In this document: positions 1-44,956 of the stretch, in pieces
How positions within the stretch are numbered: position 1 is the stretch's first letter
How the letters are laid out: the number at the start of each line of letters is the position of its first letter
Origin: Penicillus capitatus
Taxonomy: Eukaryota; Plantae; Chlorophyta
Length of the DNA: 64,000 nucleotides
Assembly: GCA_965649825.1 (NCBI GenBank)
Contig: OZ287708.1
Span: 203,311-267,310 of the forward strand
Direction of reading: 5' to 3'
The notes under the pieces: model-generated
What the model saw: the letters and a program-made list of their open reading frames with translations, nothing else
What the model was told of the DNA's origin: nothing
Databases searched by the model: none
Program-made: the position numbers and the translations under genes

Positions 1-2858
1 CGCAGCGACGGCCGCTCGTTTTCACAAAGAGGCCTCCCGTTACACAGCACGCGTGCGTATGTTGTGAAGGACGTGATGGGTCCAGTCGTATCGAAGATGG
101 CAAATGTCGTTTCTCTTCTGTCGCGAAAAACAATCGGGATCTCGATGTAATATCAAAGGGACATCCAGGACATCTGTTTCCTTACAGCCGCGCCCTCGTT
201 AAACAACCGACAGACAGATACAGTGTCCATTGTTCAGTGGAACTGCCTCATGACAGCAGATCTTTGCGGTGGGCGTAGTTCGATTGGTAGAACTTCTGCA
301 GGAACGGCGAGTCCGTCGACTTCTTGACAACGAGTTTTGGCTTTCCCATGGTATCGACATACTCCGCCATCTGCACCGCGACAGCCATTCAATCCACTCG
401 CTCGCTCGAACCATCCCCGTACCAGGTGGTGTCTCTGCTTGAAGTGATTCATGATCAGCTACAGTCACACGTTCGGTCAGGTAAAGAGTGAGAACTCAAC
501 GCGTGCGGTGTACCGAAAGCTCCTCGTTGCCTTTCACGAGAAGGTTGCTGATGGCCTAATGCAGACGAGCATGACAGTGGCAGTCATGGGCAGGGACATG
601 TACTCGTGTGTCCTTCACGTGAGCATGGTCTCTGATTTTCTGCGCGATCTTCTTGCGCACGACTGGAGGCGTTGCCACTTCATCGAGCTGATACGCCTGC
701 AGAACGTAAGGAACGCAGCGGCAGCACTGAAAGGCAAGAAGCACAGGGTGGTTGGTGTCGGGCGCGTCAGGCAGAGATGCCGACCGCTCGGAAGAAGTCC
801 GTGACGCTGGCGGAGGTCGGAGAAGCGACGGCGATCGGCGTCGCGTTCTTGAGACGAGCGATGATTTTTCCAGTGGCCATTCTCAGCGCCGACCGTAATG
901 CAACGCTTGACGAATCTTCAAAATGCTCTACGGCAAGATGATCATGCATCTCCTGACAAGAGCACGACTGTGGCGGCGGCTGCCGACGCGCGTCGCGCGT
1001 TCAGAGTTCGATCTTTCCCTCGTGCTCCGCCCAGTGATATATCGGTTGCTGAATAAAACGGCACCTGGCCACGTCTGAGAGCGAGCTGTCCTAGGGGTGG
1101 AATGCGCTGCAGCTCAGTCGTCTTTCCTCTCCGACCGTCCGTAGTACAGTGATAGATTAAGATGCTTGCTCTGGGCTACTGCTTTCTGAAGAACAAGCGC
1201 AAAATAAAGGTACCCAGGCACAACTCGGATTAATCTGAAAGGCACAGACGCAAAGCGCAAGATGCTCAGGCGTACAGCGCGCTGCGCGGATGGATGCGTT
1301 GAGAGATCACTGACAGCAGTGAGGAGGACGATGAAACTGACGGCGGGCAGCTGCCACAGTCCAGAACGACGCACGGCAGTGGCAAGGCAGAGTACTTGAC
1401 GCGCATTCGCGCCTCGAATCCACGTCCGTCAGCTCTCTGAGCATCGTGCTCGCGCAGCTGCGTCGGAAGGGTAGGGACAGAATCCAGGACAGGCATCATC
1501 ATCCCCTTCTAGCTCGCTCCGATTTGCCAGCCGAAAAATCGAGGAGCGGACAGTCGCACTCCGTTGGCGCGCCCATTCGTCGCGAGCAAACTCTCTCTCA
1601 TCCGAAATCGTTTACCGTCTGCAGAGCGCAACACTCACTGTGCGTTCTCTCTAGCACCGTTGTTTTGAGGACGCTTTGTTATGCGAATGCATTCCTCGAT
1701 ATCGATCCAACGCGCCGACGTCGACACGCATCTCGTCGCTCCGTGAGGGATGCCGAGTCGCTGGTCCGAACGGCAGAGCCGAGAGCAGGCGTGACTGCAG
1801 AGTCTGTCGTTCATGCGTTCCGCAGTGCATTTGCCGCACGAGAGAACATCGCCGGCGCTGGCGACATCGTCCAGGAACGCCCCGCGCGCAGAACACTCGA
1901 CGGCAGTTGTTCGTCTTTCACTACAGAGATCTTCGACAAGTGGTCTCCGAACAGAAGACGGACGTTCTCCGTCACAGCCCTCATAAAATCAGAACTCGCC
2001 AGACACTAGAAAAAAACGCCATGGTCGATTCCGATAAGGATGCAGCAGCATACCATCGCTTTCTAGTGGCAATCCACCACTTTGGTGCGCTCTGCACTGT
2101 GGAACACGCCGGAAATAAAGAAGGCGATGGCATCGGATCGAGACTGGCCTCGACTGCGATCGACAGCGCCATCAGACAGGTTGTCTGCAAAACTGCCCGA
2201 TCTATGGCTTCGCAGACAGAGCAGCAATCTTGCACAGCAGCCACACAACGCGATAGAACTTCGCTGATCGGAGCGAACGGTGTCCTCTAAGGCACTCCCT
2301 CGAGGCTGTGCGCGAGCATTAGCTAAAACGACGACTCCGCGGCCGTCCGCTTCTCGCAGAAGGCGTCGTCGGTTCCGCCTTCCATGTTCGAGGGAGTTAG
2401 GACCAACGACATCTCCTCAAACCGACTCGCGTTACACCGCGCAGAACGCTCTGTCGACGGCGTTTGCGACGGAGACGCCCGAAACAGAAGGCCCTCTCGA
2501 CGCAGAGTCCGCGCCGATCCTGCGAACGATAGAGACCGCCTCATTCCTCTGCCCAGGCAACGCGGAGCTGGCTCGAGCGGTTGGCCGTTCGCAGAATCGC
2601 GTCGGAACAGCCGCAGAGAACGCATGCGCGTTACACTCAGAGCGGAGCACACGGACAAACTGTAAGAAATTTCTTCTGTAAAACACTTCACAAAGTGTCC
2701 AGAAGCGTTCTCCCGTTCGCGTCGCGGATCCGACGACAGTGCTTAGCGTTTCTGGACGTCTGTCGGCCGATCGTTTGTCCGGCGGCGCTGCATGCGCCGC
2801 CAAACGGCCACGGTTCGCAGCCGCCACCCGCAGGTCGCGCTCGGCAACCGAGGCGGCC

Positions 2859-2864
2859 TATAAA
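2859..2864 (+). promoter_or_regulatory. TATA box upstream of the Pro-rich gene
   Basis: GGCCTATAAAGG lies ~100 nt upstream of ATG 2961 and is followed by a pyrimidine-rich leader. A perfect GGCGGCGC-tgcat-GCGCCGCC inverted repeat sits upstream at 2781-2801. Confidence 0.6.
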
Positions 2865-2960
2865 GGTCTTGTCTCAGATCCTTCCGCACTCGAGTTTCCG
2901 AGTTCTTGCGCTCTGTTTTCTGAGTTCTTGCTGATGTTTTCTGCGACCTCAGCGACCACG

Positions 2961-4084
2961 ATGGCTGATGCTCACATGACCACCGAGGATGATTACGGAT
3001 ATCCGGGAAGACCGTAAGTCCACTGGCCATGTTTCGACGCGCCGCGCGCTACAGGGCTTCTCGACTGCGGCCAGAACGCTTTTCATGCGCACGCATGCGT
3101 CCGGCTGCAGTCGAGGAGCCCCGTAGCGCGCGGCGCGTCTGCTCTTCGAGATCTCTGACCCTTGTGTGTTATGTAGATTCTCCCAAGTGACTTTGCCGGA
3201 GGTCCTAGGCGACCGACCGCCCAGGGCCTTCCAGGGCATGAGTCCGGCCGAGCGTGAGCAGTTGTACTGGGATTTGAAAGCCCAGACAACTGCTCAGAGG
3301 GGTCAGCAGCACCTCGCGGCGCAGACCCCTCCTGTGAGGTTTGGACCCAATAGGGTCCAAACCCCACAGCCTCGGCCGGTACGGCGCGCTAGGGTCCTCT
3401 CCTCGGAGGGGAGGAGAGCGCGGCTGGCCCAAGAGGGCCGGCCTGCAGCCCCTCCGCCCTCCCAGCCTGCCCAGCCTGCAGCGCCGCCGCCAATCCAGCC
3501 TTCTGCCGCCTCCCAGTCGGCCGCGCCGCCGCCAATCCAGCCGCCAGCCTCGCATCCTGCCCCTCCGAGAGCCGCGCCGCCTCAGGCCCAGCCGCCACAG
3601 CCTCCAGTCTCCCAGCCGCCACAGCCTCCAGTCTCCCAGCCAGTTCTTATGGAGTGGTCCCCTGCGGCACCAACCGCACTGCCAACCTCCCAACCTACCC
3701 AGTTCCCTATTTTTCCTCCCCGGCCACAAGTATACTGTATTCCTGCATCCCCCCCTCCTTCAATTCCTTCACGTCCCTTTTTCCTCTCCCTCCATTCGCA
3801 GCCACCTGCCTTTCCAGAACGCACGTCTTTGTATTCCATCACCCGCCCATCTGTCATTCCACCCCGTCCGTTCATCTTTTCGGTCGGCCCTCTAGGTATC
3901 CCTCCCAGGCCCTATTTCCTTTCTGGCCAGTGCATTCAGATCTGCCCACCAGCCATCCCGCAAAGAATGTACTTCATGTCGGGACAATGCGTAAGTTAAA
4001 CTATTCTTTAGTCTCTCTTATGGTTTTTTTGCTATGTAGATTTCTATCCAGAATTGGCCTGTATGGGGAGCTAGATCTGGTTAA
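2961..4084 (+). CDS. Orphan Pro/Gln-rich protein, 3 exons (2961-3013, 3177-3990, 4040-4084)
   Basis: Both donors are strong GTAAGT (3014, 3991) and both acceptors are ATGTAG (3176, 4039). Splicing keeps the frame: MADAHMTTEDDYGYPGRPFSQVTLPEV...PPPIQP repeats...IPPRPYFLSGQC...ISIQNWPVWGARSG*. There is an upstream TATA box and an A-rich run at 4120-4143. No family recognised. Confidence 0.6.
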
Positions 4085-4284
4085 TTTTTTTATAAGCTGT
4101 TTTCCTTGGGGGTAGATGAAAAAAATAAAAAAAAAATAAAAAGGGGCTGTTTTCTTTCTTTTGATGTTTCTCTGCCATTCCACCTTCGCTTTGTTGTGGT
4201 TGGCTCTGTGTTAGCTGTTTTTTTGCTTATAGGCTGTCGAAGCGCGTTCCTTGTTTTTTTACTTGGCGACTGCTGTGTAGTATC

Positions 4285-5060
4285 TGCTGTGATTGATGGC
4301 TGGAGGCTGGATGATCTACCTGCTCTATTGCTGTTGAGGAGGCTGGAGCCCGACATGGATGATCTACCTGCCGTATTGCTGTTGAGGAGGCTGGAGCCCG
4401 ACATGGATGATCTATATGCCGTTATTAGAGGTAGACGGCAGTCTGGGATGATCTGTTATCTGCTCTGTTGCGATTGGAAACATTCGTCGATTGCTTACTT
4501 GACGTAAGGCGGCTAGTGGAGGCCGTATTACATGATCTACTCGCTTCTCTGTTGTGACTGGATGCGGAAAGCCGCTAGGATTGTCTACCTGCTGCTATTG
4601 GAGGCTGGAAACTGTCTCAGATGTCTTAGTGCTGTATTGCTGCGAACGGAGGCTGTCATTGATGTTCTGCTTGCTGTGATTGAAGACTAAAAAACCGTCA
4701 TGGATGATCAGTTTGCTGGCTGCTGATGGAGGCTGGCTGGAAACATCCCTGACGATCTATTTGCTGACTGGCTGCTGATGGAGGCCCTGAGGCCGACACA
4801 TATGTTCTACTTGTTGCCATTGGATGCTGGAGGATGTCTCGCATGATCTACTCGCTGCTCTGTTGCGACTGGAGGCTGAAAGCCGTTAGGATTATCTACC
4901 TGCTGTACTGCTGCTGTCGGAGGCTGGAGGCCGACTTGGATGATCTGTTAGCTGCCTGCTGTCATTGGACCTCCGTCGTCTTCGCCCTACCTGATGTCTA
5001 GCAGCTGCTGGTGACCGTCACAGACAATCTGTTTGCCGTTCTTGTTGCTGCTGAAGACCG
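4285..5060. repeat. Degenerate ~48-bp tandem repeat
   Basis: Two near-exact units GGAGGCTGGAGCCCGACATGGATGATCTACCTGCCGTATTGCTGTTGA around 4338-4420, followed by eroded copies that retain GGAGGCTG...GATGATCT cores. Confidence 0.75.
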
Positions 5061-5087
5061 TCGTCTGGGCCCAACCCATTGTCCGGC

Positions 5088-5700
5088 CGCCGCCCGAGAC
5101 ACAAAGAGGCGTCCACCTGACGTCTCACCGCCGCCAGAGACACAATAAGGCGTCCACCTGACGTCTCACCGCCGCCAGAGACACAAAGAGGCGTCCACCT
5201 GACGTCTCACCGCCGCCAGAGACACAAAGAGGCGTCCACCTGACGTCTCATCGCCGCCAGAGAAGGAGACAGGCGTCCACCTGACGTCTCACCGCCGCCA
5301 GAGAAGGAGACAGGCGTCCACCTGACGTCTCACCGCCGCCAGAGAAGGAGACAGGCGTCCACCTGACGTCTCACCGCCGCCAGAGAAGGAGACAGGCGTC
5401 CACCTGACGTCTCACCGCCGCCAGAGAAGGAGACAGGCGTCCACCTGACGTCTCACCGCCGCCAGAGAAGGAGACAGGCGTCCACCTGACGTCTCACCGC
5501 CGCCAGAGAAGGAGACAGGCGTCCACCTGACGTCTCACCGCCGCCAGAGAAGGAGACAGGCGTCCACCTGACGTCTCACCGCCGCCAGAGACACAAAGAG
5601 GCGTCCACCTGACGTCTCACCGCCGCCAGAGACACAAAGAGGCGTCCACCTGACGTCTCACCGCCGCCAGAGAAAGAGACAGGCGTCACTCTGACGTCTT
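5088..5700. repeat. 41-bp tandem minisatellite (family B), 14 near-perfect copies
   Basis: GCGTCCACCTGACGTCTCA recurs every 41 bp from 5109 to 5642. Two variants are present (GAGACACAAAGAG and GAGAAGGAGACAG). Confidence 0.97.
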
Positions 5701-6185
5701 TCCGCCGCCGGAGAGAGAGAGGCGTCCAACCTGACGCTTGGCCGCTTCCTGAGAGAGAGGCGTCCAACCTGACGCTTGGCCGCTGCCTGAGAGAGAGGCG
5801 TCCAACCTGACGCTTGGCCGCCGCCAGAGAAAGAGACAGACGTCACTCTGACGCCTGGCCGCCGCCGGAGAGAAAGACAGGCGTCCAACCTGACGCTTGG
5901 CCGCTGCCTGAGAGAGAGGCGTCCACCTGACGCCTTTCCGCCGCCGCCGGAGAGAAAGACAGGCGTCCAACCTGACGCCTGGCCGCTGCCAGAGAAAGAG
6001 AGAGGCGTCCAACCTGACGCCTGGCCGCTGCCAGAGAAAGAGAGAGGCGTCCAACCTGACGTCTTTCCGCTGCCGCCGAAGAGAGAGGCGTCCACCTGAC
6101 GTCTTTCCGCCGCCGAAGAGAGAGGCGTCCACCTGACGTCTTTCCGCCGCCGAAGAGAGAGGAGTCCACCTGACGTCTGGCCGCC
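5700..6185. repeat. Diverged family-B monomers (~38-43 bp)
   Basis: Repeated AGGCGTCCA(A)CCTGACG(C/T) cores separated by GAGAGA/GAGAAAGA linkers. Confidence 0.9.
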
Positions 6186-7135
6186 GATGAAGACAGCAAT
6201 GGGCGACCAGCCCACCGCTCTGGAGGTCACCGGAGGCCATCCTTCCGCTCTGGCCGCCAGTGGAGGCGGTAATGGCGGCCAACAATCATCTGGCCGTCGC
6301 TGGAAACCGACCCAACGCTCTGGCCGCCAGTGGAGGCGGCAATGGCGGCCGACAATCATCTGGCCGTCGACGAAGGCCATCCTTCCGCTCTGGCTGCCCC
6401 TGGAGGCAGCCAGAGCACCCTACTTGATCTCTCGGTGCCACTCGAGGCAGCAATGGGCGACCAGCCCAACGCTCTGGCTGCCAGTGGAGGCAGCCAGGGC
6501 ACCCTACCTGATCTCTCGCTGCCACTCGAGGCAGCAATGGGCGACCAGCCCAACGCTCTGGCTGCCAGTGGAGGCAGCCAGGGCACCCTACCTGATCTCT
6601 CGCTGCCACTCGAGGCAGCAATGGGCGACCAGCCCACCGCTCTGGCTGCCAGTGGAGGCAGCCAGGGCACCCTACCTGATCTCTCGCTGCCACTCGAGGC
6701 AGCAATGGGCGACCAGCCCACCGCTCTGGCTGCCAGTGGAGGCAGCCAGAGCACTCTACCTACCTGCTCTGGCCGCCAGTGGAGGCGGCTATGGCGGCTG
6801 ACTGACATCTGGCCGTCGCTGGAGGCCGACCCTCACGCTCTGGCTGCCAGTGGAGGCAGCCAGAGCACTCTACCTACCTGCTCTGGCCGCCAGTGGAGGC
6901 GGCAATAACGGCCGACACTCATATGGCCGTCGCTGGAGGCCAACCCTCACGCTCTGGCTGCCAGTGGAGGCAGCCAGCGCACCCTACCTAATGCTCTTCC
7001 CGCCAAAGGAGGCGGCAATGGCGGCCGACTGACATCTGGCCGTCACTCAAGGCCTACCTTCTGCTCTGGCTGCCAGTGGAGGCGGCTATGGCGGCCGATT
7101 CGACATCTGGCCGCCGCCGGACAATTACTGGCGTC
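6186..7135. repeat. GC-rich satellite: 81-bp units (6445-6745) and 114/71/43-bp-type units
   Basis: An 81-bp unit appears as the 27-aa periodicity PLEAAMGDQPNALAASGGSQGTLPDLSL. GCTCTGGCTGCCAGTGGAGGCAGCCAG(A/G)GC cores recur, and the same monomers appear inverted at 61.5-64 kb. Confidence 0.95.
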
Positions 7136-7138
7136 CAA

Positions 7139-8420
7139 CTGACGCCTGGCAGCCGCTGGAGAAAGAGAGGCGTCCAATCTGATGGCTGTCTGTGATTGGT
7201 GTCAGTGCTCTTTTAGGGTGACCTTCCGCGCCGCACTGTAAGCTCTTATATCGTACAGTTGCATTTTCTTATTTTTTTCTGTAGACTTTGTGACGGGCCG
7301 GGCGACTTTTCTTCCGTGCACCACCGTTATCAGACCTGTCCACTTAACATCTCACTCTTAAGTCGCTTTGCTGAGAGCTATGATTCTATAGCTACAGTTT
7401 TAATATGTTATCAAAGCCTTCTACCTTTTTTACCTCTTATGTTTCGAGCACACAAGAAAGTACGACATCAGATTTCTTAGTTTTGGAAAGAGTAATGTGA
7501 CGAGAGAATAAAGTGCAGTCAAAGACCGTGCGTAATCTTCCCTGTGTCGAATGCACTAGACGATTTTAAGGAACTTCAGCTGCCAGCGCGTTTATCTCAG
7601 ATGGAGATTGCCTCCGCAGAATAGAATGCAGCATGGCGGCGGCGCCTGCCTATCTTGTCCTACAGAGATGACGACGTGTGCTCGCGAATGAGAGAGTATT
7701 ACACCACCACTGTGATCGAGTTCAATTCTTTTTCTTAAATGTTGTTGACGTTTACAATGTGTGTATGGTGTAATGTGTGTGACGTCAACGTTTAATATGT
7801 GCGTTTCTTATTCTATGCAAACAGTCAAGGAACACAGCGTTAAGAATGAACAAGGTATATCAACCTGATGAAGTACAATAAACAACATCAAGAACAACTT
7901 TACAGTCTTAGAGCATGCAGGAGTCAGCTTTCATAGATTGTGCCAGCTGAAGGATGACTCGGACATCCAGACACCAATGAATAGGAACTCAATGCACGCG
8001 ACAACCGAATGCAGTTTTTAATTCCAGTCTATATATGAATCTCGGCGTCAGCAACGTTCGGCAGTCTGATAGGCAGCAACAAAGCATATTAAGGGGCAGT
8101 AATAGGTGCTTCATGGAGAAGCAAGATGAAAACTAATGAGCGAAACCGGCACACATCTCAGCCATTGAGTCAAAGGGGATAGATGGCATGATGACTCAGT
8201 GCGGTGAGCATCACAGATCCGTCATGCGTGTGTTGGAATGGATACCGACCAAGGGTGCCGCGAGAAGCTTACAGGTATGCTTCCCTGGATTTTGTATGCG
8301 GACGCGCATGATGCCACAGACAGATAGACGCCAAACGCGAAACGTCTGCCGGGCAGATAGTGGGATAGATATCACTGATTTGAAAACATGTACTTTCAGA
8401 ACAGTCCTGTCCGTCGACTG
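7139..8420 (+). repeat. Left arm of the long inverted repeat
   Basis: Reverse complement of 59452-61513. 7139-7538 matches 61513-61114 with 2 mismatches (7167, 7438) and no indels. Further homology runs to ~8225, and ~8235-8420 matches ~59452-59641. Confidence 0.97.
8170..8235 (-). pseudogene. 3' remnant of the secreted-protein gene found at 59899-60483
   Basis: The minus strand reads HTHDGSVMLTALSHHAIYPL*, versus TMHNGSVVLTSLSHHVIYPL* in the right arm. Everything upstream (~780 bp, including the promoter and exons 1-2) is missing. Confidence 0.85.
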
Positions 8421-8630
8421 TCCTCTTATCGTGGATAAATAACATCATTGAGCAGTTTGGCCATTTCGGCGGAATTTGGCGATGGAGGCGATCGACGAAA
8501 CGTCCAAAGCAACAGACAAAAACGTCCTGGCGGCGGGAAGCGAAGACATTTACACAACAGATTCGGCGGGGCCCCCTCTCTCAGGTATCTCGTGATAGGG
8601 CGAATGCTCGCTCGTATCGATGACAGTCCG

Positions 8631-9315
8631 TCACACCACGTTGTCATCAACGTCGTTCTCTTGCGTCGATCGGTCGAGTCGATCATGAGCCTTGGCGAAA
8701 CTCTCTTGCACAACTGCTACGAATCGCATCTCCATTTCTCGCGTCCTGCGTTTCTCATGTAGAATCTGATTACGAAAGCAGGCAGGTACGCCATATCATC
8801 ATTCATGATCCCTCAACACGAGAGACACAGAGACGCACATTGTTTTTCAGTTCTCGGACGATCGAAGCATGCTCTCTCGCCACGCGCTCGTTTTCGTTAT
8901 TCTTTTCTTGAAGTGAGGTTCTGAGTTCAGCGAGGTCAGCGTTAGCTCTTTCCAGATGCTCTTGCATCTCTCGTTTCTCTTCCTATTCACCGGGCAATAG
9001 TCATGCTCTCAGCGCAGGAGGCGTCGCGGATGCCTACCTCTGCCTTGGCACGCAGACTGTTCGTTACGGCGACGATATGACCAGATGCTTCGTCCAGATT
9101 CTGTTGTGCTCGTTGTAAACGCGTTCTCCATTCTGCCTCCAACTGACGTGCCCGATTCACCTGCACCAGAGAAGACTGTTATCCCGATCCCGCCGCGAAT
9201 GCATGAGTAAACAAAACGCCTCTCGATTCTTCTCGTGGATCAGACGCTGCAAAAACGCGATCTCGTTTTGCGCTTGTCGCAATGTCTGTTGGTCAGAAGG
9301 TGTTTTTAATTCCAT
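8631..9315 (-). CDS. Small orphan coiled-coil protein, 4 exons
   Basis: MELKTPSDQQTLRQAQNEIAFLQRLIHEKNRE / VNRARQLEAEWRTRLQRAQQNLDE... / EEKREMQEHLERANADLAELRTSLQEK... / ILHEKRRTREMEMRF...DDNVV*. The first intron (9161-9219) is GC-AG. Confidence 0.7.
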
Positions 9316-9526
9316 CGCCTGTTCTCTTCCTGACGAGAGTGTGTAAAATTGACAGGCGAAACAACTACAAATGATTTGACATTTTCGTCAACGCGTTTAG
9401 AAAAAGAATCCCAACCATGCACATCTTGCAAGCTCGCACAGCATCCAAAAAGAACGAAACGTCGTCTTTCTGAAACACTGAGTTGTACATCGTGAATGCA
9501 CAAGGCATATTAAGAGAATAAAGAAT

Positions 9527-10976
9527 CTAATACAGTCGATTCAGAATGTAGTTGGTCATTAACTGAAGCGAATGCTTTGCTGGAGAGTCCAGCAAATCCG
9601 ACAGAGCAGCACGCGCCTAGAGAACGCGATCGTCAGTGAAGAGGCATGACGGCGATGATGTGACAGCAACCTTCAGAGCCTCGTCCGATGCGTACTGCAT
9701 GGCATCTGCAATGCCACCGACGGACTTGGTAAGCTGAATAGCATTTTCCAGAGATCCATCCTCTCTGAACTCTTCTTCGATCAACTCCCGCAATTCCGTA
9801 GACTTACGCAGTGCAAAGATAACGGGAGCTGTCAGATTTCCACTCGCCAGATCTTGACCCTGTAGACGCAACACAGCAAGGGACTCGACAAGCGAATTTT
9901 TGGGGACAGAGAAAGTGCCTGCGGTTTTCCAAGTATCTCTGTCGATTGCGTAAAGTCCAGAATATCATCCACCACTTGAAAGGCAAGACCGAGATGCTTG
10001 CCATAAGCATACATGGCAGCCTTTCCTGCCTCGTCCAGACCTACAGTACTCTCAGTGTAGAGGGCGATGCGCGACAGGGGTAGGTACCGCTGAAGATGGC
10101 AGAGGCTCGGCAGCTGGCAGCGATCAGCGATGCTGTTTTGAAGAAACTTTTGTTCATGTACTTCTCCAATGTGGTCTCCGTGTCGAACAGGACAGATGCT
10201 TGGCTGATCTCCCCATTGGCAAAATCTGCAATGACCTGACTGATCAATTTGATCACTTCCAGATTTTCGAGATTCGCCAGGTTCCATGAAGACTGAGCAA
10301 ACAAGAAATCTCCAACCAGCACAGCCATTCGTGTCCCATACAGGCGATTGACTGTGGCCTTTCCTGGACACACTCAGTCAGCAAAGAAAACGCCTCGCTC
10401 ATTTCTGACCTCTCCGCATGTAACACTCATCAATCACATCGTCATGAACCAGACTCGCCGTGTGGATCATCTCGGTGATCTCTGCCAGTCTTCGGTGCTT
10501 TTCCGTCAGCTCACTTCAGAAAATGCCTGTTAGATAGAGGGCGTGCAGGTATGCAGGTTTCACCCGTTTTCTGCCGTGGCGCGAGCAATCAGTAGAACCA
10601 ACAGAGGGCGAAGGCGTTTCCCTCCTGCCCCAAAAATCTGCTCCGCTGCTGCTAAGAGCAATGGATGTCGCTCCCCGATCGATTCCTTGAGATTCGTGTC
10701 GAGAATTTGCAGATCGTTTTCCACCGGTGTCACAATCTCTCCTAATGTTACTGGCGTTGCCATATTCTGCATCTCGCTCGCGTCACGACGACAGACACTT
10801 CTGTGATCATTGCACCTGTTCGGCGTCGGCGTTGAAAGAAGACGGTGTGGAGCTTTGTGTTTTGGCCGTTTCGTTGTGCAAAGTTGCATGAACGCTCGAC
10901 ACGCCTTGAGTGTACTTGCGAGCGTTGTGGATAGACCCTCGCGTTTTCCGCATACGTCCTTCGTTGCTGAAACCAT
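9527..10976 (-). CDS. SPS: Solanesyl diphosphate synthase (plastid trans-prenyltransferase), ~6 exons
   Basis: [75 protein letters not shown], with a transit-peptide-like N-terminus. The start codon is approximate. Confidence 0.95.
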
Positions 10977-11538
10977 CTGGACGCACACTCGGGCGATACG
11001 CGGTTCCTGCGATCATGGTGAAAACTCGGTTTTCGTTAGTAAGCAGCGCATACGATGACGCATCATGTCAAATTCTACGAGGAAACGACGGTGACTTGGA
11101 AAAGACGGTGACGCAACAGGACTACCACAGAATTGAGCATGAAACATTCACTAAGCTGCTGCACAGACTTGGCACTCAATTTCTCTCCCAGATCACTGCT
11201 ATTGCCACCCGGGCTGCATATTTGCACGTAAGCCGCTCTTCTGGCGAAGCCATGATATCCCTGGCCACCCTACCATCAGAGAAATGGTTTCATATGCACA
11301 CGGCTTTCAGAATCTCCATGCATAAGTGCGGTACCTGCTAATGCCATTGAGACGGAGAGTAAGTGGTGAAGGGTCATCCATACCAACAGAAGGATGAAGG
11401 GTAGACGTCGATGGCACCTTTCTTTCTTGAAATATCTCCCGGGTATATTCCAGTGGCATCATCTCTACGAGCCTCGGACTGTCAACGGAGGACTCTCTCG
11501 GTACTGTTATCGAAATCTAGACAGTGCCATCGACTTAC

Positions 11539-12522
11539 ATGGCCAAGACATTTGCCATCTCTATCCCGCGACCTTCCCAAGTCCAGGGAACAAAGACAAG
11601 GCGAACGGATGTTCGACCCAGTCGACAGCCTATGTATCGACGGCCGGGCCGCCAATCGATGACGGTCGTCGCTCTTCGTCACAATTCGACGTCTTCAGAT
11701 GCAGATCCGCCACGAGAAAAGGCATCCAGTGTCGGCTCTGTGGGCAGAGAGCTGGAGCAGATGGTGCGTGTTCCACCTCTGTCCTTCCCTTCGTTGCGGC
11801 AATGGGCTCAGCGTTTGAACCCAGACATATGGGTCCCCCTCATGACACTTGTCGGATTCTCAGCGACAACTTTTCTCGTATTTGCAGCAGAACCAACAAA
11901 TTTCTTGCTGTTCTTTGATCACAGTGTCCAGAACTGGACGGTCTCGACCATTCCATCCTCCATTCGCTATACCGTTTTCCAAAAGGGTATCTCCAACATC
12001 TTTTTTGTCTTTGACTTTGTCGTCGGCTCTTCATTGATCTTCATCCATGGACTTGGAAAGAGAAAAAAGGAATTGGCATTGACTGGATTCTCAGCTTTGT
12101 TTTTCTACGTTCTCATGGGTTCTCATAACTATGAGGGATGGGTGATCCATTTCCTCAAAGAAACCTTCCATCGATGTCGTCCACAAAGTGGCATGATTTC
12201 TTATTCTTTTCCAAGTGGACATGTCACCTGTGCCGTTTTCTTAACGGGAACACTGCTCTATGTCTGGCTGCCTGCCGCAGAGCGAAGTCTCAACACAGAT
12301 TCCCCTTCATTCGTTCGACGGTATGTGGAAGTGCTAAGGTCGGGCATGGGAAACAAAATGCTGTTTTGGGGACTGAGCTATTTGTGCACTTCGATCGGTC
12401 GGGTGGGAGGAAATGTGCATTGGGTGTCGGATACAGTAGCAGGTGGCTTAGTCGGAATGGCACTCACCTCTCTTCTCGTCTCATCCTATACAGCCCTGTA
12501 CAACCGCATAGACAAAGTTTAA
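11539..12522 (+). CDS. PAP2-family lipid phosphate phosphatase, intronless
   Basis: All three PAP2 motifs are present: KETFHRCRP, SFPSGH, GRVGGNVHWVSD. Hydrophobic helices and a Ser/Arg-rich N-terminal extension. Confidence 0.9.
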   Translation: MAKTFAISIPRPSQVQGTKTRRTDVRPSRQPMYRRPGRQSMTVVALRHNSTSSDADPPREKASSVGSVGRELEQMVRVPPLSFPSLRQWAQRLNPDIWVPLMTLVGFSATTFLVFAAEPTNFLLFFDHSVQNWTVSTIPSSIRYTVFQKGISNIFFVFDFVVGSSLIFIHGLGKRKKELALTGFSALFFYVLMGSHNYEGWVIHFLKETFHRCRPQSGMISYSFPSGHVTCAVFLTGTLLYVWLPAAERSLNTDSPSFVRRYVEVLRSGMGNKMLFWGLSYLCTSIGRVGGNVHWVSDTVAGGLVGMALTSLLVSSYTALYNRIDKV

Positions 12523-12675
12523 CACCCGATTCTACGAACAGCCCCTATTCCTAAACCCGAACGAAATCTCAAGCATATGTCACAAAACGGACAAAATCAT
12601 AAAACAGCGAAAAAACAGAAGCGGTCATGACAGGAAAAGAGAAAGAATGAACACAAGTGTCTGCCGAGTGTTGGA

Positions 12676-15408
12676 CTAGGCTCTGGAAGCGGGGAGGTAC
12701 TCCCTCTTCGTGAATTTTCCGTTTAGACTCTTGAGGGCACTCATTAACTTGTTGGTATCGTTCACCAACTCTTGCATCTCATTCCAGTCGAGCTGAAAAG
12801 CTGGATGTCGATATTTGTCCATTTCATCTCGCTCTTCTTCCCTTTCTCCTTCGATCTCCTCCTGACGATCGGCAACATCGAGATCATGCGCCGCTCTGAG
12901 GGAGAGGATTCTGAGCGGTTTGTCGTAGAGGTGATGAACGAGAATTCTGAAAAAGAGTGTGAGGAAAGGCAGTGGAATGAGCAGTGCAGAATAAGGGAAT
13001 CTCTTGATCGCGAATAGGCCGATCATCATAGACTGCATGACGACCAACCCCCCTATCACATGTTCAAATATATGCTCCCAGAGCTTGCCACCACTTTGAT
13101 ATTCCTCTGAATAGATATACAACATGTTGTAAGTCCATGTCAGCTTCATTGCCAGGAAGTACGCCAACGTGACTGGCAGAACGATGGGATTGACAACGGA
13201 GAAGGCCAGACCCAACAGAATGGTAAGTGTATGATTTGGCACTTCTACGCCGTACTCCATCGTCTGGTGTTTCCAGATTCGGGCCTTGGCGCGTTCCGTT
13301 CCAGCAAACCTGCCCATGAGCCATAGCTGTATCAAATTCACAAGGTTCAGAAAGCTGATGCCTCCTTCGAGTAAACCGGTGTAGAGAATGTAAGAAATGA
13401 AAAACGTGGCAGACTGCGGTGCAGCGACACCCAGGATATCTCGAATGGAGCTTGGATTGTCTCGGATCTCTTGGATCTGGGTCAAAAGGGAACTGGCAAT
13501 GAAGCTAAAGAAAAAGACAGTGATTGTTTGGAAGACAAAGTACTTTCGCACAACCCCGAAATCGATCTCGCTCAAACTGATCATACCCTGCGCACGATTC
13601 ATGTGCTTCAGCAGAGAAGGCAGAAAAGCCAAGAAGAGCTTTAGAGCCAGATTGGGCACAACAGCCTTCAAGATTCCATTGATCAATGGAAAAGTGACGA
13701 TCGAGCCGATGACGGGGTATCGTTCCAGACGATCCATTTGGATGAGGCCCTGGACGAAAGTGACAGGCACGATGAAGAAGAGACAGAGACAGGTAAAACT
13801 GATCCATGCTGCCAGCAACCGCACAGTGCGTTCCCATCCTCTCAGTTTCAGATTCTCCCAGATCAGTTCTTCCGGATGCGGTGCTGCCTGAACATTCCAA
13901 AACGTCGGGAAATGATGATGGAAGGCCGTTGCTGCGATCGTCTGCGCCCATCTACTGCGAAATGTCACGAAGGCAGCCGGGACGTGCCATTGCGTCATGG
14001 CAAACCTCTCTTCCGTCATACGAATCTTCAGCGACTGCAGTTTCAGGACAAAGTACTCAAGTAGATCGACCTCCAGAGGTTTTGATCCAAAAGCTTCGAC
14101 AGCCCAGCTGCCTTCCAGCAATGGCACAATTCTCTTCTTGATGATATCGACGTCAATGATCCCTTCGTTAAGTTTTGAAACATAGTGGTCTATCAAATCC
14201 TCCAGCTTCTCCGTTATCTTGTTGTAGTCGGAGAAGAGTTTCTCCAAAGTGGTCGTGTCATAAATGACGTTGGCACATTTGACGAGTCCATTGGGATAGA
14301 CATCACGAAACTGTTTGAGGACAATCTCTTCCAGACGTGCACCGTTTGCAAGTTGCGATGTGACCCACGTTACTGGATCCATGTCTGTCACATCACAGGG
14401 ATTCACCCACTTCGTTCCAGCTTCTGCAATACATACATTCATTGAGTCCCGACGACAGACATTTCCTAACAACGCCATGTTCTTGGTCTTTCTGAGCGAC
14501 ACTCTCTTTGTCGTTTGCTGCAGCTGATCTCCGACCGTCTGGGCCAATTGTGTCGAAATCTGATTCACTTGTGAGATCCCTTGTGTCGCAACGGAGAAAA
14601 GCAATTCGATGGAAGATTCGACACGGGCACGGAGACGTTTGGGTAGATACTTGAACAGTACAGATCGCATTAACCGATCCAATGGCGATCCAAATCTCAA
14701 TCCTGGCACATCTGTGACCAATACGGTATGCGCCTCGGCACCGTTCTCCGTTGTGGCCAGAAATCGAATTCTGAGATCCATGGCATCGTGATGATACGTC
14801 CACAGAAGCTTCAGCGTGTACAGTGTGATAAACCAGACGGACAGGAGATGAGCCCAGAGGCGATTGGAACCGGGTTTGATATTCGCCATCGACAGTTTAT
14901 CGAAGGATCCAATCTTATAGCTCACCGACTCGGCATCGCCAAAATCGGTTGCCTCGAACTGAGTGTCATTCACGGCCGTTGGATCGTTCTCTCGTATCTC
15001 CATCAATTCCTCTTTCGTCAGTTGTCCAGCCTCGAGGCGTTCCAGAATATCTACGCGTTCATCGGTGAGATTCACAGGCAAAACGATGAGCAGATTGAAG
15101 AGGGACAGGACGACGAAGAGTCGAATGCCGAAGGAAAAGAGGCGGAGATAGACGGCAGCATCGTATCCGGCTGTCTTGATGATGTCCTCTTCGGTAAAGG
15201 AGAAGAGAGGACGCACCCAGCCGAGAAAGTAGGTATCGGGGAGTTGCTTCGGCCGCATGTATTTTGGATGGTCGACATAGCGTTTGGGCGCATAGATCTT
15301 CTTTGTGTACTGCGACCGTCTGAGCACGTTGAAAGCGAAAAGACATCCGACGAATCCCGCCAGGTCCCATGCAACTGTGACACTGAACGAGGCAAATGTC
15401 GTCGCCAT
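12676..15408 (-). CDS. OSCA: OSCA/ERD4 (CSC1-like) calcium-permeable mechanosensitive channel, intronless, ~910 aa
   Basis: IYAPKR, AGYDAAVYLRLF, AAFVTFRSRW, APHPEELIWENL, YGVEVPNHTLTILLGLAFSVVNP, YQSGGKLW, and many transmembrane segments. The ORF track starts at a TTG; the first ATG is 15408. Confidence 0.95.
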   Translation of the reverse strand: MATTFASFSVTVAWDLAGFVGCLFAFNVLRRSQYTKKIYAPKRYVDHPKYMRPKQLPDTYFLGWVRPLFSFTEEDIIKTAGYDAAVYLRLFSFGIRLFVVLSLFNLLIVLPVNLTDERVDILERLEAGQLTKEELMEIRENDPTAVNDTQFEATDFGDAESVSYKIGSFDKLSMANIKPGSNRLWAHLLSVWFITLYTLKLLWTYHHDAMDLRIRFLATTENGAEAHTVLVTDVPGLRFGSPLDRLMRSVLFKYLPKRLRARVESSIELLFSVATQGISQVNQISTQLAQTVGDQLQQTTKRVSLRKTKNMALLGNVCRRDSMNVCIAEAGTKWVNPCDVTDMDPVTWVTSQLANGARLEEIVLKQFRDVYPNGLVKCANVIYDTTTLEKLFSDYNKITEKLEDLIDHYVSKLNEGIIDVDIIKKRIVPLLEGSWAVEAFGSKPLEVDLLEYFVLKLQSLKIRMTEERFAMTQWHVPAAFVTFRSRWAQTIAATAFHHHFPTFWNVQAAPHPEELIWENLKLRGWERTVRLLAAWISFTCLCLFFIVPVTFVQGLIQMDRLERYPVIGSIVTFPLINGILKAVVPNLALKLFLAFLPSLLKHMNRAQGMISLSEIDFGVVRKYFVFQTITVFFFSFIASSLLTQIQEIRDNPSSIRDILGVAAPQSATFFISYILYTGLLEGGISFLNLVNLIQLWLMGRFAGTERAKARIWKHQTMEYGVEVPNHTLTILLGLAFSVVNPIVLPVTLAYFLAMKLTWTYNMLYIYSEEYQSGGKLWEHIFEHVIGGLVVMQSMMIGLFAIKRFPYSALLIPLPFLTLFFRILVHHLYDKPLRILSLRAAHDLDVADRQEEIEGEREEERDEMDKYRHPAFQLDWNEMQELVNDTNKLMSALKSLNGKFTKREYLPASRA

Positions 15409-15977
15409 ATCGCAGGTCGAAGTCAAAGAACAGGCTTCGGGTGCGAGTTGACTCTGCGATTGATGTGATTGCGAGGTCTCTTCGTCGTCACGTCGCAAGG
15501 ATACGTCCCGTCATTTCCAGAGGCGACCTGTCGGAAACGAGATCGGTGCGATGTTGTTAGCCAAGGCAAGGCGAAATGCACATGCGAACGTGGAAGCTCA
15601 AATTCGCAGCCGTTTGTCGAGTGATCATCTGATGTGACGTATATGATGACATGCTATGAGGCGAAAGCTAAGCGCGAAGGATTCCTCTAGCGGCATTCCT
15701 TGCTTCGCCTCGTCGCTCTTTAGAACTGACTGCATCTGCAATGCCATACACGAGCACCCGTGCTTCCTATCCACCTGTCTCGCTCGGAAGACCGAAAAGA
15801 AAGACGATGAAACGGGACATCCATTAATCTGGATGCGTGGACTTGAGGTCTGACCAATTTTGCATTCGGAGATGTGACGTGTCGCCCGTTCGCCTGACGA
15901 AAGAAAGAGCGAAAGGGCGTCGTCGTTCTGATCGTCCTTGATCCGTGTCGATGACGAGGCGACCAAAAAGTGAAAGA

Positions 15978-16049
15978 AGGGGACTAGCGGATTCGAACCA
16001 CTGGCCTATCGATCTGCAGTCGATTGCTCTACCACTGAGCTAAATCCCC
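15978..16049 (-). tRNA. trnC-GCA: tRNA-Cys (GCA)
   Basis: GGGGATT-TA-GCTCAGTGGTAGAGC-A-ATCGA-CTGCAGA-TCGAT-AGGCC-AGTGGTTCGAATCCGCT-AGTCCCC-T folds as a full cloverleaf with a U73 discriminator and a T-run downstream. Confidence 0.97.
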
Positions 16050-16162
16050 AATGACGACAGTTTTGGCATTCCGCTTTACGTACGATCGATCCTATTGGCC
16101 CGACAGCTCTTCTCGTTGTCGGACCATTCCTGTGTCAACGTGTTCCGTTTCTGCTTTCCAAA

Positions 16163-16603
16163 ATGTCGAACGAATGTCTCCGGCAACTCAAAATCAAAAC
16201 AGCGAGCGTGCATCGCATTCGCAAGGAACTGGCTTTCTATGAAGAAGACGCCGTTCGAGAACAAAAGCGCTTCGAAAAACTGAAAGCTGATGGGGTTGAC
16301 CATCACGACCTCCAACAAGCTGTCTGTTCTGCGCCGCCGTGCCACCTACGCTCGCGAAACGGATGCTTATAGGAAAATGTGCTTACGGAGGCAAAGGCCA
16401 TGATTCCAGATTCAAAGCAACGTTTGGATTCCGCCATCCGCGACCTCAAAAACTTCCTGGTCAATCTGTTCTCCAATTTAAAAGCCAAAAACATGAACGC
16501 CGGCGATTGCGTACAGGCTCAGGAGTCAGAAGATCTCGAAGAAACCGAGGCCTTTACAAAAGCGCATGCGTTGTTGACAGAAGTGCAGCCTCTTGTCGTG
16601 TAG
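16163..16603 (+). CDS. TBCA: Tubulin-folding cofactor A, 3 exons
   Basis: LRQLKIKTASVHRIRKELAFYEED...DLQQA / ENVLTEAKAMIPDSKQRLDSA..., joined by two short GT-AG introns. Confidence 0.93.
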
Positions 16604-16682
16604 AGGACGGACAGACAGACAATGTACTGTTATGGCTCACTGTAAAACACGAGAGCATTTGTGTAAGTAGAGAGAAGATTGA

Positions 16683-19600
16683 TCAGGGTCCCAATTCTTT
16701 GTCCTTTCTCTTCACCATTTTGAGCAGTGCCTCATGGGAAAACTCGGATTCCGGTTGGGCAGGATCGTTATGCAACATGCGAAAGACCAGATCCAAAAAG
16801 ATCTCCAGTTTCGCGCCGAGTGGTGTATCTTCCTCCCGATCGGACGATACGTCGAATTCTTCGATCGCTCCATCGCGTCCGCGATACCAATCCATGATAT
16901 CGCGGAAGCCGCTTCGATCGAGTTCGTATCGATTCGGCAGCGCTTTTCGATCGGCTACACGGGCAAGAGCCTCTAGGAAGTCGATAAAGCTCAGGCTCTC
17001 ATATCGGATGTAGTCTTTGATCTCATCTTGCACCCACATCCGACTCCTGAGATAGCACAGCTGCGCATCCTACGGCACAGATGATCATGAAGATCATTTA
17101 TTCATTCTGAGCGATGGGTCTCAATGTATGCACGCACCAGAAGAGTGAACTGCGCGTCAATGAGTCGGCAATCTTCCATCAGGAGCAGCCAGCCGTCCAC
17201 TTTCATGACCTTGTACCGCAATCCACCACTTACAGGTTTTGTCCTGTATCGACGGTAGATGGCTTTCAGTAGACTCGAGTGTTTCTTCAGGAGGAGATCC
17301 ACGTCTTCACAATAAAGGCGGTTGTGTCGGAAATCGTTATGCGCCATGCGCATAGATGGCGCCACGCTCTTTTCGACTCTCTCGACGAAGAAACGATCCA
17401 CAGCTTCGACCACATCCACGACATCGCCATTCTTGATGTACTTCAGAATCGCTGTAAAGGACAGACGTACGAAGTTGATCCGAATCTGAATGTGAATGCG
17501 TGAGATAGATGCCTACCGATGCGGACGATGGCCTCCATGAACTCGAATCGCATCAATGCTTGCTCGTTGTTGTGTACGTTGTCTGCCGATTTCTTGTCTG
17601 CCACAAAATTGGCCACGATGAAGACCGTATCGCAATCGCTTCTCTTAGTCGCCGCATCGACGATCGCACATTCGTCCAGAAATGCAGTGAACGCGTTCAA
17701 AGAGAGGTGAAAGAGATCGCCGCTGCCAGTGGCTGCGAAATAGACAAAGGACGAGCAGAGCGTCCAGTAGTGCTTCTTCAGACAATCGTGCAACGCCGAG
17801 ATGACTGTCTTTTCGTTGGCGGCGCCGTCTTCCAGCGCCTTGATCTCTCGAGAGAGCATCGAAACGAACTTCTCTTTTCCGGTGCATCGCTGCCAATCCT
17901 TCTCAAAACTGTTTTGCAAGACCTATCATCGACACAACGCCCGCTCACATAGGAAGGACCATGTAGAGAGGCGAGCCTTTGGTGTGTCGAAGAAATCGCG
18001 TGCGTCGGCTTCGCGCGTTCTCGGTTTGAAGATGGACGTCGGCAGCGACCATGGTTCTTTGCTGGGTGCTCGATCGAGCCGTTCCACCGTCGTCGTTGTA
18101 CGCGTCTCCTGAACGGCTGTCGCCTCGAGACAGATTCGCACATTATGCTCTCGGAGATCGCTGAAGGTGTCCGCATCGAAACTCTCTGGAGATTTCACAG
18201 GAAGGCTGTGTTTCGTCGGTAACGGAACGAGTCGCGGCACAGGTCTGTGCGGCACGAAAACGACTCCAGTTCCCGGTGGCTTTGCGATAATGTCGAGAAT
18301 ATGTGTGAGGGGCATGCCCTGCTGCAGGGCCGTCGGAATCGACGTCGGTCGAGGCGGCGTCGGTAGTGGATCGAATTCTCGTTCGTTGGCGAGCGATCCA
18401 TCCGTGTAGTGATAGAAAACGGACTTTCCGCTCGGCAGTGCATAGTCTTCGAACAGACCTGCCGACACACGCGCCCCTTCCACGTGCTCAAACATCGTTA
18501 GTTGGGGTCGCTTTGCAGTTCCCTCGACGCCAAGTGTCGGTTGACCGAAACGAATCACCGTTCTTACTCTTTGCGGAGAGAGAACGACCTAGAAGCATCC
18601 ACCTCGCTGTAAGGGAAGGAGTAAAGTGAGCCGTAGGGATGCTTTGAAAGAGACGTCTGTGTTTTTGGTCTCATCTTCACAGCTTCGCAATACCATGACG
18701 GGAATCCTCCCTAGATTCCGGGCTGACGTCGAAGGACGCTTCAGCGAAAGCGTCTCCTCCAGACCAACGCCTCTGAAAGACTTTCCAGTCATGATCCTCA
18801 GAATGCGCGTACGTGTTGATGCGGATGGTTGCTGTCTGAAGGGCTTCGCAGTCACGAGCGGCGTTCGTGGCGAGCAATTTCTTTATGTTCACCGTCATGT
18901 CTGTGTTGTTCGAAGTCTGTCTGTATTCGCTGATACTCGGATTCCAGGTAGGGGATCTCACAAATGGAGAAGCGCCCCATGAATGGCACAGCGGTCGACA
19001 AAGCGTTTTCTGCAGGGCGACGTCTTTCGGGAGAGGCAAAGAGTCGCGTTCCCGTTTCCTACACACAGACACCCGATGCCTTTGCCCATACCGTGCAGAT
19101 GTGCACCTACACTGCGTCCGATCTCACAGGTGGAGGCATCGGCATCTCGGGTCGCTGTTTCTCTCGGGAAACTTCTCTTAAATCGGTAATCCATTGGCGA
19201 AACGCATCGCCGAGTCCATCTCCTTTGTGATGCAATTCCTTGTCTACATACAAACATGGGGCGTCCACTGCCCTCTACAGATGTAGAGAATAATAGCACC
19301 TTTTGAATCCGTCGATCTCTGCGTCTTCGGATCTTCGTTGTCGGAAGAGATCGCGTGAAGCGGAGGCGGCGGCGGCGGAAAATAGAACTTTGGTCTGGGC
19401 GCTCTGCACTCTTCTCTCTCTTTCGCGTCCTCGGATCGATCTTCTTGATTGAAAGAGGCCTTGGATCCGTAGAGCTCGGCCTTGTACAGTCTGCAAAGAA
19501 ACAGTCCATCCGATTGCTTAATCGAAACGCATTAAACGATACCGCGTCCTGTTCGCTTGATTCCGGGATACATTATGCAACACCGCGCTGCACAAGTGCA

Positions 19601-22600: not shown

Positions 22601-24411
22601 AGAGCATGCATGGCTTCCGCTTCAAGCATATCATTCTTCTGGTCACACTTCGCATGTATCCATGCTAGTAGCGTCTGTCTTTGATCCGATCGTGTATATG
22701 GTATGTGGCAAACAACTTGTTGCCACTTTTCCGAATCGTCTATCTCGTAGTGCTCTCGACCGAAGGCCAGAATGAAGTTATCTGTTTCATTTTGGAGACG
22801 TTCGTCGAAGAGAGGCTGTTCGAAATGCACGTGAAGCTGCGTTCCAGCACAGACGGCTGTTCTCTTGATCGTGCGCGTCTCGTCGTCTTCGATCACGTCA
22901 ACACGATCGTTACCTGCCAACCACAGATACGTAGAGAGAACAGACAACAAACGGGATTGCGTTACCGAGCGGTGTCCACTCGTCGGCATCTTTACCAAAA
23001 AGCAGCGCCACTCCCTTGGCAAAATCGGCAGGATGGTCCGTGGCAATGACACACGAGGCTGTCGACGACGCAAAATCGTCCAGCTCCTTCTGCGCGGCTT
23101 GCCACACGTGTTGAAGATGGGCGGGTCTCAGCAAAGGGATCTGGAGAATCTAACAACGCAGAGAGCGCGAGTGATGCTCGGTACTCGACGGCAGGGCGCG
23201 ACGAACTTCATCGGAGTCCCGTAGCTGCACATCGACGACACCGTTCCACGTCATGATGGCGGCGGTGGGTGCTCTTTTCAGACACGAGACAGTTCAGACG
23301 GCACAAGGCCTCAGCATCGAAGCGCACGAAGATGTTCGAGAGTATCGCCATCATCGCTAACAAACCGACGTCATCGTATTCTGTCAGCGAACCGATCGAT
23401 AGCGAGATCGACAGAGGATGTCCCTTAGACGTAGATTGTAGTTCGTGAACATGTGCGAGACGGGGGAGTGACAGCGACAGGCACGTCGACATCTGACGCA
23501 GGAAGGACATGGTGATGACCGATGGTCGTTAAAGCGACATCTTATCTATCACCTGTGTTCTGTAGTCAGATCTGGAGAATGTCTTTGCAGATAGAGCACG
23601 TCTTGTTTAAGACAGCAAACAAGAAGAGAGTGCAACGGGATGCCATCCGACAATCGAAAGTGTATCTCTGGAGATACGTCGTCCGATGAGAGGATCGAGG
23701 ACACAACGCCTTGATCGGCATACTCAAGAAACGGCGATGGGTGCCTCTAAACCATCGCCTTCGTTTTTACGGTAGAAGGACGGTCCACTAAACCTCCGAT
23801 CTGTATCCCCTTTTTCGACAATCGTCGATCGCACGGCGAATGGCGTCAGATGGGATGACGGACCGGCAATTTAAACAGAATGGCCATTTGTCCTGCGACG
23901 ATTGTATTCTTGGACATCTGTTGTTGTTTGGATCCGTGTCCTTCTGGAAATAACGTCGTCGATGAGACGAGAGTCGATGATGGTCAGGATCTCTCTGTTT
24001 GTTGTCACCGCCCGCCATGACTTCGAACGATCCATTGGACACAGACTCCGCGTCTCCTATCGCTTTCGATATTCCTCTTCCTATAGTGTGCCCTCTCTGC
24101 TGCGATTGGACTTATGAGGTCACTGCATCGTGTATACCACCGATGCGCACGAAACAGGCCAATCGAGACGCGTTAGGTGTGTCCGAAAAAATGCTGTCCA
24201 TCCATAGAAGCTACAGTTCGCGATCGGAACGCGCCGAATCGCGAACACGACCAATCCCTTCCCGTTGCGAATTCGACAAAGGAGGAGCTTCTCTTGGTGT
24301 CTGTGGCAACACAGGAATGGTGACGTTTTCGCGGATCGTACCGCAAATGCCGTCGATCATCGAACTCAAGGTCTCCGAGACGTCAGTGCGAGATCGCTCA
24401 GCAATCTTCAT
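16683..24411 (-). CDS. Very large multi-exon ARM-repeat protein with a conserved algal C-terminal region (possibly flagellum-associated)
   Basis: Exons can be joined in frame from ~23.2 kb down to 16683: ARM-like helices (AAVVWGMAR, VAAACAGLAFLA, VLVALLNLSVLERNQ, NQANRTRLYKAEL), then LTMFEHVEGARV..., LMRFEFMEAIVRI and LSFIDFLEALARVA. The 5' end (23.2-24.4 kb) is not resolved, and the region could be two genes. Confidence 0.6.
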
Positions 24412-24482
24412 TTCGTAACGTATTCTTCATTTCTGCTTTTTCTCTGTTTCGTCGACGAGTCGTCGTTTCGACATTGGCTCCA

Positions 24483-41900: not shown

Positions 41901-42028
41901 TGTGAAAAGAGTAACACACTAAGTTCTTCAGTCCGAACGAACGCACAAGACAGCGCTTTCCTGGAAAGAGGAAAGCAAAGCTGAAAACGAGACCGGAAAG
42001 CGACCAGCGCAAACTTAGTTGTCGAGAC

Positions 42029-44306: not shown

Positions 44307-44956
44307 GTATGCATGCTGGCATGCATATATCACGGCTCTTCGACGGCATAACGGGAATCCCTTAAGGAAGACACTTCATGGATCGTGGACATTTCGCCTT
44401 GTGAAATAATCTCTTTCAAAGTGATCGAAGATGTCACTTCATGACGTGTTGTTAGGCCCTGCTGTGACTTCGCGGGTCATTGTTGCTGTTGTATCTTCAA
44501 GATGGGCTTAATGAGTCTAATCTATCTCATTAAAGCTTAAAGAATCATCATGATGGTGTGTGGTCGTGGTGGTGGTGCCAATGGCAATGGCAGCGGTTAT
44601 GTATCGTTGGGTTATTGGCTTATTTGTTATTTCCAGCAATGCGCGCGTGCATCATAATTTAGGATCTGACGGGTTCGATCTGTAATCATGATGCATAACG
44701 ACAACAGTGAGGAGGGTACAAGTCTATCTTTGACTCAATCGGGTATGAGAGACCACAGCAGCATGATATATAGAAGGCAATAATAAGATCAAGTTTATTG
44801 GACCAGACAGAGACAGACACCTTTCAACATTGTACGTGCAAATGTGTGTGTGGGAGTCCACTCATAAAGTTTTTTCCTTTTTTGTTGCCGTTGTTGTTAT
44901 CACAATGAAGAAAGATGCCACGTTACTTCTGATCATCTTGATCTCCCACCTCAGAT

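Follow-up and report, generated by a model that had tools for sequence, protein, structure and literature searches.

Patchwork identity between inverted, satellite-flanked arms in a green alga and its probable origin by gene conversion

Why are two inverted copies of a short sequence, lying some 51 kb apart on one molecule, almost indistinguishable over some stretches and strongly diverged over others? The question is raised by the locus analysed here, a 64-kb stretch of DNA (hereafter, the window) that contains two inverted copies of a unit made of tandem repeats and an adjoining arm, separated by ordinary single-copy genes. The left arm measures 1.3 kb and the right arm 2.1 kb. The segment they bracket, 8425-59448, carries housekeeping genes, including those for RSN1, ATG9, Argonaute, an ELP1-like protein and GH31. 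The coordinates of the features considered below are collected in Table 1.

Table 1. Features of the window, with positions counted from its first nucleotide
Feature	Position	Strand	Remarks
Ordinary genes	1-4100		
Left tandem-repeat block	4300-7109		TRF; inverted relative to the right block
Degenerate repeats of about 48 bp	4300-5087		TRF
41-bp satellite	5087-6186		TRF
70/84/114-bp higher-order repeats of a unit of about 42 bp	6234-7083		TRF
Two degenerate 41-bp satellite units at the satellite-arm joint	7110-7190		81% match to 5940-6023
Outer edge of the near-identical core	7139		Sharp: arms differ 17 times in 7100-7138 and twice in 7139-7538
Patch A, probable haplotype-specific replacement tract	7557-7670 (at least), 7541-7730 (at most)		Left arm of the window
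Innermost left-arm piece	8233-8424		Partner 59449-59641
RSN1/ERD4 channel	12676-15498	minus	
Glucosidase II alpha, family GH31	50998-53709		
Innermost right-arm piece	59449-59641		Partner 8233-8424
Right-arm-only segment	59642-60425		About 785 bp; insertion on the right or deletion on the left
Right arm	60426-61513		Partner of 7139-8227; patch version B at about 60976-61108
Right tandem-repeat block	61514-64000		Periods of 41 bp, 84 bp and 28 bp, then 114/185/299 bp; runs off the window

Judging from its sequence, the window is nuclear DNA of a green alga, apparently close to the siphonous Bryopsidales, and it contains nothing viral or related to toxins. Its long ORFs specify ordinary eukaryotic proteins: in addition to the RSN1/ERD4 channel and glucosidase II alpha, the window encodes ATG9, an Argonaute N-terminal domain, an RRM protein and WD40 proteins, and it carries a single tRNA-Cys gene. 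The best named relatives of the GH31 and RSN1 proteins are from green algae, Caulerpa lentillifera being the closest (approximately 60% amino-acid identity), with Bryopsis and Ostreobium next. Near the left end of the window, a 104-bp imperfect palindrome (3036-3139, 83% self-complementary) lies inside an apparent intron delimited by GTAAGT near 3016 and TGTAG near 3177. Shortly after the palindrome comes a proline-rich ORF (3166-3999).

The segment 7100-8460 was aligned with the reverse complement of 59400-61552. The preliminary description of the left arm had counted two substitutions and no indels between 7139-7538 and 61513-61114; the alignment returned precisely this figure (398/400), with the substitutions at 7167 and 7438. 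We refer to this stretch as the core. Adjacent to it, the region that had been described as diverged from about 7540 to 7670 is indeed so: only 100 of the 136 alignment columns spanning 7539-7670 match (73.5%), and indels are present. Identity then recovers to 94% over 7671-7828, an interval comprising a section in which the arms are identical (7671-7730) and one with nine differences (7731-7828; 89/98, or 91%). The next 95 bp, 7829-7923, are identical at every position, and a decay sets in further on (89% for 7924-8227 against 60729-60426), both as originally noted. The arm does not stop at the limit that had been placed near 8225, however: past the segment present only on the right, 8233-8424 still matches 59641-59449 at 85.6%. 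Inward of 8424 and 59449, neither blastn nor tblastx found any homology, and a relationship at the protein level was rejected on the tblastx result. An independent repeat search recovered the same arms, as 7139-7827/60825-61513 at 93% and 7828-8096/60557-60825 at 92%. The right-only segment contains no terminal inverted repeats, target-site duplication or Pfam match.

The mosaic can be read directly from the alignment, and its unevenness is statistically significant. The arms differ at 76 sites in 1089 columns. When these differences were permuted 200,000 times, no permutation reached any of the three extremes actually observed, namely 270 consecutive identical base pairs, only two differences in 400 bp and as many as 29 in 114 bp; the most extreme values obtained by permutation were a run of 201 bp, eight differences per 400 bp and 25 per 114 bp. 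Evenly spread mutation would therefore not suffice to produce blocks, identical or diverged, that are so sharply delimited.

The locus is also available from another sample of the same species (L002/L004; ENA ERZ25074695, contig ctg340397, 572 kb). Over 2691-25408 of the window this second strain is colinear and 99.1% identical, left satellite and arm included, and its GH31 protein (P0130), encoded on the same contig, differs from that of the window by four amino acids. The left junction is common to both strains, no inverted form was seen, and the right-only segment is missing from the left arm in both. Divergence between the strains is uneven in the single-copy DNA: there are no differences over the 6.4 kb of 19000-25408, as compared to about 0.6% in 9000-19000, which looks like patchy sharing of haplotypes in the population.

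Three arm sequences were compared, the left and right arms of the window and the left arm of the second strain. Within 7557-7670 the two arms of the window agree at 80 of 114 positions, whereas the left arm of the second strain matches the right arm of the window at 112 of them. At 33 of the 35 variable sites of this interval, the right arm of the window and the left arm of the second strain share one state, from which the left arm of the window departs. Outside the patch, the two left arms agree with each other at 42 of the 45 sites at which the arms differ. Since the left arm of the second strain lacks the divergent version (patch A; the right-arm form is version B), the patch must be regarded as a replacement tract that varies within the species, not as an old difference between the arms. 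The tract is sharply bounded and between 114 and 190 bp in size. The core of the window is identical to the left arm of the second strain at 399 of 400 positions, and in that strain near-identity to the window's right arm runs on to 7730 (585/592 over 7139-7730, or 98.8%); the inner edge of the core, at 7539, is therefore a feature of one haplotype only and does not mark a fixed boundary.

Besides the patch, the strains differ at seven positions in the arm. Three of these (7827, 7957 and 8024) fall on sites that distinguish the arms and show the right-arm state. The remaining arm differences are largely constant: all but one of those in 7731-7828 are arm-specific in both strains, and those in 7924-8227 are fixed in both with the exception of 7957 and 8024. 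The comparison thus shows directly that the arms vary within the species and that states are shared between them, polymorphism common to the paralogs being found in the patch and at the three additional sites. In sequences such as these, shared states are the expected signature of continuing exchange, or of polymorphism common to duplicate copies. The preliminary description had left two answers standing, gene-conversion tracts or a constrained cis-element. Conversion is favoured by the presence of the right-arm patch in the second strain; the cis-element drew no support.

With a probability that we put at about 70%, the arms represent an inverted segmental duplication rendered mosaic by gene conversion, patch A being a tract replaced from a template some 27% different. 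The duplicated unit would consist of the tandem repeats together with approximately 1.3 kb of flank, its copies standing 51 kb apart in a gene-rich region. Since the duplication, short stretches would have been exchanged by ectopic gene conversion (arm-to-arm and non-allelic), each event resetting roughly 100-600 bp to identity while unconverted blocks stayed diverged. Such a process would account for the patchwork observed, with about 99% identity over 7139-7730 in the haplotype that escaped replacement, 91% over 7731-7828 and 100% over 7829-7923, followed by 89% and 86%; presumably, identity falls inward as conversion grows rarer toward the edge of homology. Patch A would be a single tract, overwritten in the left arm of the window only. 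The second perfect block at 7829-7923 and the further shared states imply that the whole arm is exchanging sequence, and not the core alone. As to the mechanism, we infer gene conversion rather than double crossover.

The source of patch A was sought in the window and in the related loci L001-L005, and no donor was found there. Versions A and B diverge by about 27-30%, a figure unmatched elsewhere in the arm and similar to or greater than the divergence between species. With a divergence of this order, patch A is unlikely to have survived from the duplication; the simplest donor would be a third copy, older and more diverged. Derivation of the patch from the satellite was rejected, as only chance matches of 10-12 nt were found. 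Also rejected was a strand-coordinated mutation shower: the A/B differences comprise 20 transitions and 13 transversions, with G>A equal to C>T.

Comparison with other species provided a time frame. The contig of a sister species (L001; ERZ26696514, 2.24 Mb) shows approximately 88% DNA identity to the window, with a divergence of 0.227 at four-fold degenerate sites of the GH31 gene. It is colinear with 41406-58024 of the window and, faintly, up to about 58581, so that synteny breaks within approximately 0.9-1.4 kb of the right arm. The end of synteny can be placed between 58581 and the inner end of the right arm at 59449 (window 58024-59448 compared with L001 17196-18795). Past this end, the sister species carries lipoyl-synthase and Tos1-like genes, both missing from the window; neither arm nor satellite was found in the 5.5 kb compared past the decay of synteny. 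Within the colinear region lies a Wbp11-like gene that forms a single 223-aa ORF in the sister species (L001 16408-17079) and two overlapping ORFs in different frames on the minus strand of the window (57232-57582 and 57548-57907, the gene spanning 57232-57907); a frameshift, a small intron or a sequence error could account for the split.

Two more species inform on the left side. In a third species (L003), which was located through translations of satellite ORFs (a homology search that returned one protein) and whose flank is about 78% identical, the same left flank is followed by the same satellite, and the contig ends inside the array. In a distant species (L005; RSN1 62% identical), the left flank gene (window 254-884) and the polyprenyl-synthase gene occur in the same order and orientation as in the window; COG4 lies between them, and there is no satellite and no arm. 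The RSN1 and PAP2 block of this species (L005 8661-12626, window 9669-15408) is inverted relative to the polyprenyl-synthase gene.

The inner arm has diverged by 11-14% and the core by 0.5%. That the inner-arm value lies below the neutral divergence between the sister species, and that no right arm occurs in the L001 DNA compared, would fit a duplication postdating the species split. The left locus looks ancestral, because the third species shares the locus and the distant species shares the gene order and orientation at the junction; the left copy is thus likely to be the parent. One way to generate inverted copies at the two ends of a segment is through staggered breaks. Given that the left junction is ancestral, such an origin requires a later re-inversion. 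An inverted duplicative insertion leads to the same final structure.

The satellite arrays are less orderly than the arms. The right array is composed of the same repeat families as the left one and is inverted relative to it, but the arrangement of its sub-blocks is different and does not mirror that of the left array. The position of the left array is common to the window, the second strain and the third species. Where the left array meets the arm, the two degenerate satellite units listed in Table 1 reach into the core, so that approximately the first 50 bp of the core, with its CCAAT motif, are satellite sequence. Exchange spreading inward from the satellite draws no direct support from this junction, because left and right are strongly dissimilar in the units closest to it (17 differences within 7100-7138).

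The arrays were themselves found to vary. The strains differ at 65 positions in 500 bp of the 84/114-bp satellite (window 6500-7000 compared with L002), as against about 0.6% elsewhere, and parts of the left array of the second strain are closer to the right array of the window (up to 90.7%) than to its left array. The pattern is suggestive of fast turnover of the arrays or of exchange between them. Many units contain a 24-nt motif, CTGGCTGCC-AGTGGA-GGCAGCCAG, that forms a 9-bp inverted repeat with a 6-nt loop. Exact copies occur in 20 satellite units of the window (at 6474-6977 and 61611-63904), in five of the second strain (L002 18430-18877) and in 11 of the third species (L003 10298-12472). 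In the latter, the flanks are only about 78% and the satellite units about 70% identical overall to those of the window, whereas the motif is exact. Being kept far better than its surroundings, the motif may form a hairpin or serve to bind a protein. An exact scan of JGI metagenomes for it gave no match.

The arrangement invites comparison with known inverted repeats. In human Xq28, the FLNA and EMD genes lie on an invertible segment flanked by inverted low-copy repeats. The likeness consists in a gene-bearing segment of about 50 kb placed between inverted repeats able to convert each other or to mediate inversion by non-allelic homologous recombination; the difference is that no inversion is seen here, as the strains do not differ in their left junction, whose order and orientation are those of the outgroup. 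Large mammalian palindromes, a textbook case of conversion between arms, have arms that are more than 99% identical and are kept so by gene conversion (PMC8981503). The palindromes of mammalian sex chromosomes resemble the present locus in comprising two inverted copies on one chromosome that undergo intrachromosomal gene conversion, and in an identity far above that predicted from the age of the duplication. They differ in the length of their arms (tens to hundreds of kb, as opposed to about 1.3-2 kb), in the spacer, which here amounts to 51 kb of housekeeping genes present in single copy, in the satellite arrays that lie next to the arms of the present locus, and in their uniformity: here identity is patchy, from 100% down to 86%, and averages 93%. 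An identity above 99% over the whole arm, as in palindromes of that type, is not found, the values being 93% over 7139-7827 and 89% and 86% in the inner arm.

[quoted passage not shown] Here, too, inverted duplicates bracket a segment, and one of them lies close to a break of synteny with the sister species. The model, however, has the interior inverted relative to the ancestor, whereas the left junction is ancestral in the present case; no inversion of the interior was found, the distant species keeping the order and orientation of the left flank gene and the polyprenyl-synthase gene.

Selection offers a different account of the core. Strong purifying selection would also result in its near-identity, which would be equally expected on that basis given that the comparison covers three nearly identical copies. 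On this account, the core would be a constrained cis-element or a small transcript, such as a promoter reading into the satellite, a boundary, or a site of recombination or replication. The core has sharp limits, one at 7139 and the other at about 7539; the sequence 7261-7538 is AT-rich (40% GC amid 50-56% GC), and the motifs named in the preliminary description do exist: CCAAT at 7174, ATTGG at 7195, CTTATA at 7245 (an outward-facing TATAAG when read on the minus strand) and a T-rich stretch that resembles a splice acceptor, its terminal AG lying at about 7284. Moreover, the strains differ only once in 7139-7556; this single polymorphism in 418 bp is a lower rate than the roughly 0.7% of the flanks, though not significantly so (Poisson P of about 0.2). 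Each of these motifs, however, is a single short match, and CCAAT lies inside a degenerate satellite unit. The inner edge exists in one haplotype only, high identity extending to 7730 in the other, and exchange involves the whole arm. No Rfam match was found in 6900-8600 at E values up to 1, and identity with a known RNA was rejected; on both strands, shuffled sequences are predicted to fold more stably than the core does (z = +2.26 and +1.00). None of the arm ORFs, including one of 73 aa in the core, scored at or above the curated Pfam cut-off, and the arm as coding sequence was rejected as well. Finally, the polyprenyl-synthase gene reads toward the arm, which apparently lies downstream, at its 3' side, and is therefore poorly placed to be a promoter. 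Taken with the state sharing described above, these results make a constrained element unlikely.

The arms might instead belong to a dispersed repeat or transposable-element family, possibly of a foldback-like kind, the mosaic reflecting lineages of that family and not exchange. Drosophila foldback elements have inverted ends made of tandem repeats, and inverted tandem-repeat ends around unrelated DNA are what is seen here; in addition, patch A requires a donor, diverged by about 27%, from outside the window, a hint at further copies. Yet the 64-kb window and the related loci L001-L005, about 80 kb together, yielded no third copy, and an exact scan of JGI metagenomes and viral contigs with a 28-mer of the core gave no match. 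Neither the edges of the arms nor the indel of about 785 bp show terminal inverted repeats or target-site duplications, for which reason a bounded transposon was rejected. A Pfam scan covering the arm ORFs and the proline-rich ORF in the left flank recognized no transposase or other family. The presence of the satellite at the same locus in the species with flanks only about 78% identical is unlike a recent insertion, and the sub-blocks of the two arrays are not mirror-ordered. We regard membership of such a family as improbable.

More doubtful still is the notion that the two units of satellite and arm are the ends of a 51-kb cassette that can be inverted or mobilised in a foldback-like manner, with the core as a putative recombination site and the 24-nt satellite motif as a recognition or hairpin element. 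Were it true, the 51-kb segment would flip or move in the population. Least credible of all is that patch A arose through consensus error or collapse in assembly and that the real left arm matches the right one there: version A is indeed confined to the window and the independent assembly of the second strain has version B, but A can be aligned to B position by position (about 73%), its edges are clean and sharp, it has no low-complexity or homopolymer character, the sequence around it is identical to that of the second strain, and such an artefact accounts for the patch alone and not for the rest of the mosaic.

Gene conversion between the arms is thus the reading we retain. The process is ordinary and well understood; the organism is new. 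The locus would provide an instance of small-scale ectopic gene conversion that still varies within a species, in a wild, uncultured member of a poorly sampled green-algal lineage, with one strain displaying the arms as they were before the replacement of a 114-bp tract and the other as they are after it. It would also illustrate how sharp edges of conservation inside repeats can be mistaken for those of regulatory elements, one edge of the core being peculiar to a haplotype. In the end, the wider architecture may outweigh the core in importance: inverted satellite arrays around a 51-kb block of genes would constitute a ready substrate for inversion.
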